Positions 4,414-17,964 of a stretch of 64,000 bases of DNA are shown here, one piece after another. A model generated the notes under the pieces. That model was not told the origin of the DNA and searched no databases. It was given only the letters and a program-made list of their open reading frames with translations. Source of the DNA: Lama guanicoe. Lineage: Eukaryota. Made by a program: the position numbers and the translations under genes. Positions within the stretch are counted from its first letter, which is position 1; each line of letters starts with the position of its first letter. The DNA lies in the NCBI GenBank assembly GCA_013239625.1, contig MU056262.1:9152134-9216133 (forward strand), read 5' to 3'.

Positions 4414-4731
4414 CCCTGGCCCAGCGTGTCCAACCTGGCCAAGGACTTCATTGACCGCCTGCTGACAGTGGACCCCGGCGCTCGAATGACTGCACTGCAG
4501 GCCCTGAGGCATCCATGGGTGGTGAGCATGGCAGCCTCTTCATCTATGAAGAATCTGCACCGCTCCATCTCCCAAAACCTCCTCAAACGTGCCTCGTCGC
4601 GCTGCCAGAGCACCAAATCTGCCCAGTCCACACGTTCCAGCCGCTCTACACGCTCCAACAAGTCACGCCGTGTGCGGGAGCGAGAGCTGCGGGAGCTTAA
4701 CCTGCGCTACCAGCAGCAGTACAATGGCTGA
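4414..4731 (+). CDS. PSKH1: PSKH1 serine/threonine kinase H1, last coding exon (upstream exons lie left of the window; 1-4413 is intron)
   Basis: Acceptor ...ggcctctag at 4411-4413, then [35 protein letters not shown]...[10 protein letters not shown]. This is CaMK-family subdomain XI plus the PSKH1 C-terminal tail. Synteny with CTRL/PSMB10/LCAT. Confidence 0.96.
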
Positions 4732-6677: not shown

Positions 6678-6683
6678 AATAAA
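6678..6683 (+). terminator. PSKH1 polyadenylation signal
   Basis: AATAAA about 1.95 kb after the stop, preceded by U-rich TATTTATTTTGTGTA...TTTGTAAATGTA typical of 3' UTR ends. Confidence 0.8.
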
Positions 6684-6967
6684 CAGGCTGCCTTCCCCAG
6701 GGAAGGCTGCCCATTCATTCTGACAGCCCAGTCTCCTTGCTGTGGACCAAGGGGTTGCCAAGGAGGTGGGGGAGCCCAACCTGGTCTTGGCTAGTCTGGG
6801 AGGATCCTGACTCCTCAACACCTGCCATGCCAGAAGACAAAGTCAGTGTGTGGAGTGGGACTCCCAAGAGCCTCTCCTTTTCCCTGAGCCAGGAAGACAG
6901 GAATATACAAGAGGACAGAGCCTGGGGTCTTTACTGGACTGAGATGGGGAGAGGGCCTCTGGTGGGC

Positions 6968-8791
6968 TCAGTTGTAAGCTATGCCTGATTGACCCAGGTG
7001 CTGAACTTGCTAACCTGAGCGTACGTGGCAGGTGCACACACATTGCAGTCACTGGTGCCCCGGGAAACAATACTAGTAAGCACCCACACATTCCCATTCT
7101 GGCTGATAAGAGGACCTCTGGAGTCATTCCTGAGGGGAAGAAGGGCGAAGTCAGCGTGGGGGGTGCAGGGTGCCACAAGGTGCAGAGTACAGGATGGGGT
7201 GCTGTGCTCACCTGGCACAAGGAGGCCCTTGAAGCACTTGCACAAATCATGGAGTTGGTGATGTGTGAGCCCCAGAACTGCTGGCATTGACTCACGGTGA
7301 CGAGGGGCAGAACCACCTGCTGCAGGCATGCCGGAGTCACATTGTCTATGGGCCAAGAGGGGGTGGTTAGCCCCCAGATGACTTGTCCCCACCCTACACT
7401 CCCATCCAGATTTTTGATCCAAGTTCCTACTCATGCCACTGAGGCGGCCCCAGCCAGTGGTGACACACGTGAGGCCTTCAGGCAGCACCTCATTTGAGGA
7501 AGCCAGGCAAACTGGTGAGATACATGTTGTGTACTGGGCTGGGGAGGCGAGCTTCAGTAGTGTAAGATCATTATTGATGGTGGTGGGTTCCAAGAGGGGT
7601 GCGTGATGGCCTGTGGAGCCAGGAAGGGGCCATGTAGGATGGGAGTGGGCACAGGCCCCCAGGTAATGGGTGCTGAGGAGGCTAGGCTAGGCATGTCCTG
7701 AATTCCTCATCCCCAGAGCCCACACACCTGCACCACCCACTCTTCCCTATCTGCAGCCCAGGGACTCACCCGAGAGATGGACAGAACCTGCAAAGTCTCA
7801 GCACTGGATGATGGGTTGTACTCGCCCAGGATGACAAAGTGGCTGCAGTAAGAGTGGGGTTGGGCAGCCGCAGGGAGGGCAGAGTGACAAGAGAGGGGCA
7901 TCCAGGACAAAGGAGTTGAGGAGGTGTGGACTGGGGTGGGGCAGGTAGAGGGGAAGCACTCACACAACATTGCAGTAGGCAGCAATGACCATCCAGGCCT
8001 GGCTGCTGAGGGAACCACCGCAGAAGTGAAAGTCTTTGCTGTCCTGGGTTCAGGGGTCAGACATACGGTGCACTCAGGCTATGCCTAGGCATGAAGCACC
8101 TGGGATCTTGCCCCACCCGCAGGGTGCATGTACCTGCAGGGATACCTGGCAGGGCCAGGAGCCCAGCACTACCTTCTCCCCATTGACAGCCCTCTAGCTG
8201 AAGCTCAGCACCGGTTTGATGGCAGGAACACTGCAGCCTGCCATTGGGCTGGTGAGGACCTGTTTCCCACATCCCAGCCTACCTCTCACCTCCTCCTGGG
8301 TGTCCCCAGGGTAAGCCCCCTAGAGGGGTCCAAATCGAGAAGACTCATTACGCCTTCTCACCCTTAGCACCTCTGGGCCTGTAGCTATCTCAGCTGCCTG
8401 CATCCCTAGCCTCCAGGTTCTGTCCGTTCTCCCACATCTCTCCAACCTACTCCCTACCATTTCTCAATTCCACCCCGACCCCCCAGCCCAGGCCATCTTT
8501 CTCCCTGATCCCTGGGATAGTCTCCTCCCTAGCCTCTCTACCCACTCCAGATTTCAATGATCCATACCTTGCATGCAGGTTAAGGGCTCTTCCTAAACTA
8601 CAGGTCCAACCATTGCTTCTCAGCTTCCTAAACCCTCCCCCTGGGCCTGGCCAAGCTCCTGTCCCATTTGTGGGATTGCCTACCTCTTGCTTCCTCCCAG
8701 CCCTGGCACATCCTTTTTCCTCTGCCCATTCTGTCTACCTGCTTTCCTTCAAGCCAGCTGAGGGGCCAAGGGTCAGTCTGAGCAGCAACAT
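6968..8791 (-). pseudogene. CTRL: CTRL (chymotrypsin-like protease) unitary pseudogene, 7-exon structure retained
   Basis: Exons: e1 from ATG 8791 (MLLLRLTL then diverges, no in-phase donor), e2 8237-8134, e3 8043-7964, e4 7842-7770, e5 7610-7431, e6 7345-7212, e7 7129-6968. Lesions: in-frame TAG at 8194-8196, AAHC->AAYC, 1-bp deletion near 7585, extra base at e7 start with GDSGGP->NDSRGP, 1-bp deletion near 6983. Confidence 0.93.
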
Positions 8792-8956
8792 TGTGATAGG
8801 CATGAGGCTGAGAACTGGGCCTGGCTTTATGGCATTCCTTGTCCTTGGGCCTAAGGCCAAGCCAGCTGTGTAGGTTCAGCCCCCTCCCATGCTCTAGTCA
8901 GGAGGAGGGTCTCTTTAGGCCGAGGTCCTTGACCCAGGCCCTGACTTACTGGAGTC

Positions 8957-10709: not shown

Positions 10710-13117
10710 TCACTCCACATCCATGGCCTGCACCGTTTCCTCCAAGAGCTCCAGGGTCAGTGGCATCACTGTTTCGGACAGGACGGCTGTGGTCCCAGGG
10801 ACAAAGCGGTACTGGCTGGACCTGGGAAGGAGAAGGGATGACCTCGCAACATGGGCCCATCACGTGGCCCATCCTCTCTTTGCAGCCCCCTATCTCCCTT
10901 GCTACCACCCCATCCTCCCCTGTGGTCCCCCGTCTCCATGCTCCTACCTTTCTATGGGCTTTGTGGGAGAGCTCAGTGTTCTCAGCAGCTTGGCACCAGT
11001 CCCCGTGATCACACATGCATCCACACTGCCCCCAGAGCCCAGGTCACCCAGGATCCCTGCAGTGATGGCTTCCACTAGCAGCCCCTGTGCTGCCTCCAGC
11101 TGTAATGATGTGTGTGTATATGAAGCTGGGTGGACCCTTCTGGTATCACCCTCAGGCTACAACCTTGAGACTTTGTTAATCTTTAAGCCTGGACTACTTA
11201 CCATTTGCTCACACCCAAACCCTTCTCTTCCCCTACACCCCCGTCTCCACCCCAAGCTCCTCTTTCTTTGTTTTAGGTTTCCTTCTCTCCAGAGACCCTG
11301 TGTTCCCACTGCCCCCCATCTTCACAAACTACTCTGAGTCACAGATATGGCTCTTGCCTGTCCACCCACCCAAGGTGGTCTTAGCCCCCGGACCCCGGCT
11401 CACTGCCTTTTTCTTTCTGGGCCTTAGACAGCTTTGAAGCAACGTCTTCTGCTTCCATCCACCACAAACAAAATCCACCAGCCCCCACCTGCTAGTCCCT
11501 CCTCCCTCAGCTCCAAATGGTTCTCTCTGACTTTCGACTTCTGGAGTGCAGTCCAAGCTTTGGCACTGACAGTGGTCTGCTGGAGTAGCACTTCTCCACC
11601 CTCACTCCACTGGCCCCTCAGTCTCCACTTAGTCGTCACCTCCCAGAAGCCCTTCCCGACTTCCAGACTAGGCCGGGGTACCTCTACGTTTCCCCAGCTC
11701 CCGGGGGGACTTCCCACCAATGCACGCAGAGTGGGGGGCGGGTGTCGCTCACCGTCATGTTCGGCTGGAACCGGTCCTCCAGCACTGCCAGGGCTGCGTC
11801 TTGGCCGGAGCCTGCAGGCAGGAGGGGTGTCTGAGGTTAGCCTCGGCCGCCCCGTCGCGGGACAAACGTGAGGCCAGGGTCACATGGGCGGGGTTCGTGG
11901 GGAAGGGGCGCAAGTGCTTACCCAGGGCCGTGAAGGGCAGACGGCTGTAAGAGCCATGGGGGTGCACGCTGTAGAGCTGCGGCCCTGTGAAGTCTACGCC
12001 ACCCACGATCAGCGAAGCCCCGACGTAGCCACGGTACCTTTTCGCGGAGTGGGCGCAGTCAGCCGAACGCACACGGATCCAGGTCCCGCCTCTCCACTAT
12101 TCCACCCCTGAACCGAGCCCCGCCCCTTCCCGTGGTCTTGCGCCCCATGACCAGCATCGCTTCTTCCTGTTGCTCTCTTAGCTCCTCTTAGGCCCGCCTC
12201 TTCCGGTCTCCCAGACCCTCGCAGCCTGGCCCTTTTTCCTGGTTTACCTCCTCAGCCCCGCCCTCCCCGCAACTGCCCCTCCCCAGAGTCATCTTAGTCC
12301 TGCCCCAATACCGGAAGAGCGTCTGGCGAAGGATGCGCGTGACCGTGGCCACTCGGGGCTCCCTGCCCGTGGACAGCGTGTGTAACTCTATGTTGGACGC
12401 CGCCATCCGCGTGGTCATCTCGGCGTCCGCGGCTACTCCAGCCCCACAGCAGCTGAGGGTGAAGGGAGGGTCAGTATGGGCGGGGCTAGGATGTGCGGGG
12501 ACTCGGGATGGGAACGATGGGGTGGTTCTTGAGTGGGGGAACCAGGCCCGGGAATTCTCACTAGATTTTGGGGGCGATGAAGTGGATCTTTTCGCAGCTC
12601 TTGTCCGCCACGACTGAATCGTCAGTGGCCCGCGTATCCGCGCCCAGTATGACCCCGTCCTGGGGAGAGGGGCGAAGAGGAGGAGCCGTTGGCTCAGTGC
12701 CCACCTCCCATTGCCGGCCGGCCCACTAAGCCGCACAGTCCAATTCCCTGCTCACTTGGAACACAAGGCCTGCGATGGTGGTCCCGGTCTTGCGTGCATG
12801 AGGGACCCGGAGCCCCGGGAGGGCGCGTTCCAAGGATGCGTTTCTGAAAACAGAAGAGAGTGGCCCAGGTTTCAGTTCTTCTGGGACCCCATCACATCCC
12901 TCGACTCCTTCCTGGTCTCCCTCACCTGGGGAAGGCCTGGGAATCCAAGTCGTACAACACACGTACCCTCCCCCAAACTCGCCCCAGTAATTTTAAAGGC
13001 TCTGGGACTCTCACTCCCGGATGCCCTCACAGCATTCGGGACCAACCATCCCCTAACTGACCTCTGGCAGTTACCGAAGGAGAAGCCCCCTCGGGGCTCT
13101 AGCGCCTTCTTCTGCAT
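10710..13117 (-). CDS. PSMB10: Immunoproteasome subunit beta-2i (MECL-1), 8 exons, 273 aa
   Basis: Exons 13117-13062, 12843-12756, 12659-12562, 12452-12312, 12037-11922, 11811-11753, 11099-10948, 10821-10710 sum to 822 nt with GT-AG introns. [14 protein letters not shown]...[12 protein letters not shown] (catalytic Thr1)...VQAMDVE*. Confidence 0.97.

Positions 13118-14609: not shown

Positions 14610-17964
<3,355 letters not shown>

Follow-up and report, generated by a model that had tools for sequence, protein, structure and literature searches.

Evidence that CTRL is an old pseudogene with multiple lesions in a camelid genome

CTRL, the chymotrypsin-like protease, is a serine protease of the S1 family that pancreatic acinar cells make as a zymogen; it is an isoform of chymotrypsin present in low abundance and cleaves trypsinogens. 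Here we describe the CTRL gene located on the minus strand at positions 6968-8791 of a 64,000-nucleotide stretch of contig MU056262.1 (hereafter the window, to which all positions refer), which is very probably an old, multi-hit, non-processed pseudogene in a camelid. The closest described case is the loss of CTRL in vampire bats, which an earlier sequence-only reading of the window had named correctly (Blumer et al. 2022, PMC8956264; bioRxiv 10.64898/2026.07.24.740446) and which has been taken to mean that this minor chymotrypsin, which also degrades trypsinogen, is dispensable. In both cases CTRL has been inactivated by several mutations where it ancestrally lies, and the mammal concerned has a specialized diet. 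However, the lineage and the lesions differ, and the diet of vampire bats is protein-rich blood rather than the fermented plant matter of camelids. Moreover, the vampire-bat loss was validated by reads, selection analysis, and pancreas expression, whereas the camelid loss is known here from sequence comparison.

In the folivorous howler monkey, another plant-eating mammal without CTRL, the gene is one of the pancreatic genes listed as lost (PMC13651202) and further pancreatic-secretion genes were lost as well, although this is an independent event in a primate and one item in a gene-loss list. The same paper cites the loss of PNLIPRP1 in eight herbivore lineages (cited in PMC13651202). As cited there, a digestive gene expressed in the pancreas was lost convergently in plant eaters, the pattern proposed below for CTRL, but that gene is lipase-related and its convergent pattern is published, whereas the pattern for CTRL is drawn from annotated protein models. 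Finally, the Ctrl-knockout mouse (Mosztbacher et al. 2020, PMC7366634) resembles a natural loss in that the CTRL protein is wholly absent, and its phenotype is mild, with chymotrypsinogen content nearly normal and pancreatitis severity unchanged; natural loss of CTRL should therefore be tolerable. Unlike the case described here, the mouse carries an engineered deletion in a laboratory strain rather than a loss that arose in evolution and has stayed fixed over millions of years. In a full-text literature search, no paper described camelids, ruminants, or cetaceans as having lost CTRL, although the gene-loss tables of large comparative screens may contain a camelid loss.

CTRL exons and their lesions

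The CTRL locus of the window lies between the 3′ end of PSKH1 and PSMB10/LCAT, in the gene order PSKH1, CTRL, PSMB10, LCAT, SLC12A4. Because these neighbors fix the locus and the nearest named proteins are annotated as "chymotrypsin-like protease CTRL-1", the window gene is the CTRL ortholog at its ancestral position and is neither a retrocopy nor another chymotrypsin. Six introns are retained, the AG/GT dinucleotides are canonical at 12 of 12 intron ends, and the seven-exon layout and exon phases agree with those of the CTRL family, which bears out the claim of the sequence-only reading that seven CTRL exons remain at the syntenic place with most splice sites kept. For exons 1 to 7, the lengths in the window versus those expected are 53/52, 104/104, 80/80, 73/82, 180/181, 134/134, and 162/162 nucleotides (nt), wherein the expected values derive from 264-amino-acid (264-codon) CTRL orthologs rather than from orthologous genomic sequence.

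The reading frame is broken repeatedly along these exons. Exon 1 persists as a remnant (8739-8791) that retains the ATG at 8789-8791 and the GT donor at 8737-8738, but it is 1 nt too long and the hydrophobic core of the signal peptide is replaced by MLLLRLTLGPSAGLKES. Exon 2 (8134-8237) has no indel, but, besides substitutions, it carries a stop: the codon for Gln14 is TAG (8194-8196), one codon ahead of Arg15 of the Arg15-Ile16 activation bond. In exon 4 (7770-7842), the 9 nt that should follow its split codon are missing, an in-frame loss at the 5′ end that removes Pro-Gly-Arg. Exon 5 (7431-7610) carries a 1-nt deletion in a C-rich AACCCACCACC run near 7584-7587, which moves the reading from frame 2 to frame 1. 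Exon 7 (6968-7129) reaches its expected length via one +1 and one −1 event, both of which shift the frame. Its first bases are GAATGAC, although Gly-Asp (GGN GAC) is expected from the protein alignment, and the extra base at 7127-7128 creates an in-phase TGA at 7124-7126, ahead of Asp194 and Ser195. A 1-nt deletion near 6983 then changes the C terminus from ...INQVIAYN* to ...VNQA*, and the ancestral CTRL stop codon, TGA, lies at 6968-6970. Exons 3 (7964-8043) and 6 (7212-7345) are free of indels and carry substitutions only.

The tally is thus a single stop codon and three indels that shift the frame, together with the damaged exon 1 and the 9-nt loss in exon 4, and no open reading frame (ORF) survives from the CTRL ATG when the translated frames are read by eye. 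The sequence-only reading had named these same lesions, including the exon 5 deletion, which it placed near 7585, and had called CTRL a multi-hit pseudogene on their account; all of them proved to be present, and the stop, the frameshifting indels, and the other exon damage confirm that description.

Substitutions, which the sequence-only reading did not list, have also accumulated at catalytic and invariant sites. The codon of the catalytic His57 in exon 3 is TAC (7975-7977), which encodes Tyr, and the same exon replaces the invariant Ile47 with Ser and Thr54 with Ile. In exon 2, Ile16 has become Ala (codon 8188-8190) and Trp29 has become Cys (codon 8149-8151). Exon 6 replaces the invariant Gly185 with Ser and Ser191 with Leu, along with the mammal-invariant Tyr172 with Phe and Gly188 with Arg (CTRL zymogen numbering). 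In exon 7, the GDSGG motif reads NDSRG, corresponding to Gly193Asn and Gly196Arg (chymotrypsin numbering), and Cys201 and Trp215 are changed to Ser and Arg, respectively. Asp102 is retained in exon 5 within NND, and the codons for both Asp102 and Ser195 persist, but in shifted frames and behind stops. Judged by the criterion for a functional S1 protease, namely a catalytic triad in one frame together with an Ile16 N terminus, the window CTRL lacks both.

These changes were compared with a reference set of 37 intact CTRL orthologs ranging from mammals to lungfish (tetrapods plus lungfish), with which the window exon pieces are colinear in the alignment. Among 77 aligned positions that are invariant in this set, 14 are changed in the window. 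When each intact ortholog was left out in turn as a control, 36 of the 37 showed 0-2 changes and the lungfish showed 6. Identity of the window CTRL to intact mammalian CTRL is 71-75%, whereas the intact proteins of primates, carnivores, bats, and pangolin all fall in a single 90%-identity cluster. In Tajima relative-rate tests against pig over exons 4-7, 19-24 changes are unique to the window and 1-6 are unique to pig (p = 4e-6 to 9e-3 across six outgroups), and the pig CTRL model has 0 invariant-site changes over these exons, where it is intact. The window CTRL therefore shows relaxed constraint and accelerated protein evolution.

Taken together, this damage leaves no possibility of a functional enzyme. 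The signal peptide has been destroyed, a stop precedes the activation site, and two exons are frameshifted; beyond this, the His57 codon encodes Tyr, the activating N-terminal Ile16 is Ala, and both Trp215 of the S1 site and Cys201 of a disulfide are missing. The secretion signal, the activation site, the frame, the catalytic histidine, the residues of the oxyanion hole and S1 site, and a disulfide have each been struck independently.

Lesions shared with dromedary and the age of the loss

Sequences from other sources carry part of this damage. The GenBank protein KAB1274020.1 from Camelus dromedarius (P0006), deposited as "Chymotrypsin-like protease CTRL-1", aligns without gaps to window positions 6982-7203 and is identical at 71 of 74 residues, such that approximately 4% of residues differ between the window and the dromedary model. 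The two have in common NDSRG, ISQ, SRG, and the premature ...VNQA* terminus, and seven of the invariant-site changes in the window also occur in KAB1274020.1. With a length of 131 amino acids, this model reads exon 6, continues through intron 6, and enters exon 7 in its shifted frame, where the premature stop terminates it. It is thus an artifact that bridges the frameshift by intron retention. Two ORFs from Logan contigs of a camel-like taxon (P0001 and P0129) contain the same lesion-bearing exon 7 DNA in another frame, and both of these and the dromedary sequence have a common 1-nt insertion in intron 6 relative to the window. The sequence-only reading had assigned the window to a probable camelid and had proposed that camels be checked for shared lesions. 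In dromedary, this check yielded the exon 7 frameshifts and the seven substitutions, derived features that also support the camelid assignment.

At the level of raw data, 210 31-mers were sampled from 6900-8900, a density at which any given base very likely lies inside a sampled word. In 14 DNA sequencing runs, which carry four organism labels and come from five studies, a fraction of 0.95-1.00 of these words is present. A 35-mer spanning the exon 7 lesion had no match in a scan of metagenome contigs.

Because the exon 7 frameshifts are common to the window and dromedary, the loss of CTRL predates the split between the window species and dromedary. Since the pig CTRL model is undamaged across exons 4-7 and none of the window lesions recurs in other artiodactyls, the loss would have followed the branching off of the camelid stem, and inactivation probably took place in the camelid stem lineage after its divergence from other artiodactyls. 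The living camelids comprise four New World and three Old World species, whose lineages split roughly 16.3 million years before the present (PMC12127551). The difference of approximately 4% from the dromedary model indicates that the window is not dromedary, and the stretch recurs almost word for word under four organism labels, as many as there are New World species; a New World camelid is therefore the probable source. If the window derives from a New World camelid, then inactivation is older than this split.

Alternative explanations and the surrounding genes

Several observations weigh against our interpretation of the locus as a camelid pseudogene that left no working CTRL, and each is considered here with the explanation to which it lends weight. 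RNA sequencing runs from reproductive-tract samples and from the organism labeled E contain approximately 35% of the 31-mers sampled from 6900-8900, an interval that excludes the PSKH1 polyadenylation signal (AATAAA, 6678-6683, plus strand), and part of the CTRL locus may still be transcribed. These RNA matches and the retention of every canonical splice dinucleotide would fit re-use of the locus for a non-coding RNA or for a short peptide with a non-proteolytic function. However, the RNA matches could reflect noise, whether intronic or from read-through, or carried-over DNA, and no ORF survives from the ATG. Furthermore, the camel-like sequences match the window at approximately 94-96% of residues without exon-specific constraint, in a comparison that covered intron 5 plus out-of-frame exon 6, exon 6, the 3′ part of intron 6 plus exon 7, and the 3′ flank. 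We consider such re-use very improbable.

It is also conceivable that the locus is dead but that a working CTRL duplicate exists elsewhere, in which case there would be no functional loss and the pseudogene would not be unitary, as the sequence-only reading had called it. An intact camelid CTRL could hide in the 104-member cluster of P0014, because the protein searches show cluster representatives only. Against this, the copy at the ancestral syntenic position with all of its introns constitutes the remains of the ortholog itself, and a local search of the window recovered no second copy within its 64 kilobases. The sole camelid CTRL protein in the protein-search results is the artifactual dromedary fragment of this same locus, and, to our knowledge, CTRL is single-copy across mammals generally. 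There is only a slim chance that a duplicate maintains the function.

The remaining adverse points concern how far independent data reach. The support given by the other DNA runs consists only of shared 31-mer words, and the comparison of frame-breaking lesions with Camelus covers those of exon 7. A protein search with an out-of-frame exon 2 ORF of the window (8060-8272), in which TAG and CAG are told apart as Leu versus Pro, returned only a non-camelid ORF with the CAG intact. Nevertheless, the proposal that an intact gene only seems damaged through mistakes of sequencing or assembly, which gains some appeal from short homopolymer-like runs such as the exon 5 CCC run that are typical error sites, is close to refuted: it would have to account for six separate disruptive events plus 14 invariant-residue changes, including a substitution-type stop and His57Tyr, even though the independent dromedary assembly and the Logan contigs show the same exon 7 lesions, the 14 runs contain 95-100% of the sampled words, and the PSMB10 and LCAT exons next door are clean. 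An old, multi-hit, non-processed CTRL pseudogene thus remains by far the most probable account of 6968-8791.

The identification of the exons was made piece by piece, as each exon was searched singly rather than as a joined spliced model, and the pieces were set side by side only for alignment display. The local alignments took in the exon pieces minus window positions 7448-7485 in exon 5, where tblastn was masked. Four pieces match the Pfam Trypsin family (PF00089); exons 5 (39.5 bits) and 6 (22.4 bits) score above the curated cut-off of 20.6, and exons 3 (15.1 bits) and 7 (16.3 bits) score below it. The best solved structures in PDB for the exon pieces are rat and bovine chymotrypsin A/B, and the named matches to the exon 6 ORF, from chimpanzee, dromedary, and hippopotamus, are CTRL-1 rather than CTRB, CTRC, or elastases. 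A Logan ORF, P0004, that resembles a partly spliced CTRL transcript of human or ape was excluded from the comparisons. A separate argument, by which it would itself indicate loss that CTRL models from bovids and camelids were missing from the matches, was withdrawn, because the intact CTRL proteins of many orders form one 90% cluster.

Adjacent to the pseudogene, the last coding exon of PSKH1 (4426-4731, plus strand) belongs to a convergent neighbor. This exon and, upstream of CTRL on the minus strand, the C-terminal exon of SLC12A4 are presumed identifications made by recognizing the ORF translations by eye. A variant polyadenylation-signal-like hexamer, AGTAAA, is present on the minus strand at 6930-6935, approximately 35 nt past the old CTRL stop codon. 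PSMB10 exons 1-7 (10950-13117, minus strand, upstream of CTRL) were identified by a PDB match and exon alignment, and they align without a stop or frameshift inside the exons, which served as a control for assembly quality. The last exon of LCAT (14613-15194, minus strand) is likewise intact and, by a PDB match, corresponds to human LCAT residues 224-416 (193 residues; E=3e-115). The statement in the sequence-only reading that neighboring genes are free of comparable lesions therefore holds for these PSMB10 and LCAT exons. A run of 140 N lies at 16740-16879 within the LCAT gene region.

CTRL in other cetartiodactyls and its probable dispensability

Annotated protein models suggest that CTRL has also deteriorated in relatives of camelids; the pattern described here is drawn only from such models and covers cetaceans, muntjac deer, hippopotamus, and suids. 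Models from blue whale (P0021, P0036, P0043), fin whale (P0066), gray whale (P0116), and narwhal (P0078, P0082), considered along with an ORF from an ENA contig (P0002), have out-of-frame peptides in common. These frameshift-encoded peptides sit at the end of exon 5, at the end of exon 6, and at the C terminus. The models contain TCHHWLRPPQRCG in place of TCVTTGWGRLSGVG, the former being the expected product of a frameshift after the Cys codon, as well as GASGPPR for GASGASSCQ and, with loss of the stop, WINHSLQRSPP... for WINQV.AYN*. The narwhal and fin whale models additionally carry Ser195Cys. Judging by these peptides, CTRL looks like a pseudogene across Cetacea.

Three models from Muntiacus reevesi and M. 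muntjak (P0113, P0130, P0131) have 12-14 invariant-site changes and share the deletions TW....GCLSG and AGAS....CQ along with a truncated C terminus. The Hippopotamus amphibius model P0008, which is labeled LOW QUALITY PROTEIN, is changed at 11 of 80 invariant sites, including Ile16Thr, Trp27Gly, and Gly43Ala. Both hippopotamus and muntjac CTRL evolve faster than that of pig in the relative-rate test. None of the frame-breaking lesions of the window is present in the cetacean, muntjac, or hippopotamus models and, because of this, erosion of CTRL seems to have been recurrent in Cetartiodactyla. The sequence-only reading had proposed a lineage-specific loss in a foregut-fermenting herbivore. The lineage-specific part of that proposal is now doubtful, since the whale, hippopotamus, and muntjac models appear eroded through different lesions. 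The dietary idea would fit recurrent erosion in a broader form, because the stomach is multi-chambered in each affected lineage but not in the pig.

Position 16, the activating N terminus, shows a distribution that may be older than these losses. This residue is Ile in 37 of the 37 references and in cetaceans, Ala in the window, and Thr in hippopotamus, in muntjac, and in P0128, a non-camelid Logan ORF; pig also has Thr, as read by eye in a shifted frame of P0059. Replacement of Ile16 may date far back in artiodactyls and have weakened CTRL before it was lost. Because Thr or Ala occupies this position in all of these lineages except cetaceans, the distribution suggests a weakening in the stem artiodactyl. 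A tentative wider scenario, which we regard as possible but rather doubtful, is that CTRL was weakened in the stem artiodactyl and then inactivated independently in lineages with multi-chambered stomachs (camelids, cetaceans, at least muntjac, and perhaps hippopotamus) while suids kept it, such that its loss tracks forestomach digestion.

Note that the suid annotations include an unusual form. The pig (Sus scrofa) model P0059 and the warthog (Phacochoerus africanus) model P0132, both labeled isoform X1, take as their start an ATG where intron 1 ends, translate exons 2-3 in a shifted frame, retain intron 3, and enter the normal frame from exon 4. The out-of-frame ORF of this isoform is also found in the window, where it occupies 8060-8272.

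The likeliest history of the camelid gene would be that constraint was lost and neutral decay followed. The loss would have been tolerated because CTRL is a low-abundance and largely redundant chymotrypsin isoform. An adaptive benefit from reduced trypsinogen degradation is possible.

These results bear on how CTRL is treated in comparative work. Positive selection on CTRL has been reported in five river dolphins (PMC13433582), and this signal may instead represent pseudogene decay. More generally, where cetartiodactyl CTRL is taken as coding in a selection scan, the decay of a pseudogene may be what the scan picks up. With the locus described here, camelids join the short list of natural CTRL knockouts, which includes vampire bats and the howler monkey, and the camelid pseudogene lends support to the idea that, among chymotrypsin isoforms, CTRL can be dispensed with. 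A possible and testable connection also emerges between digestion in a forestomach and a smaller repertoire of pancreatic proteases.

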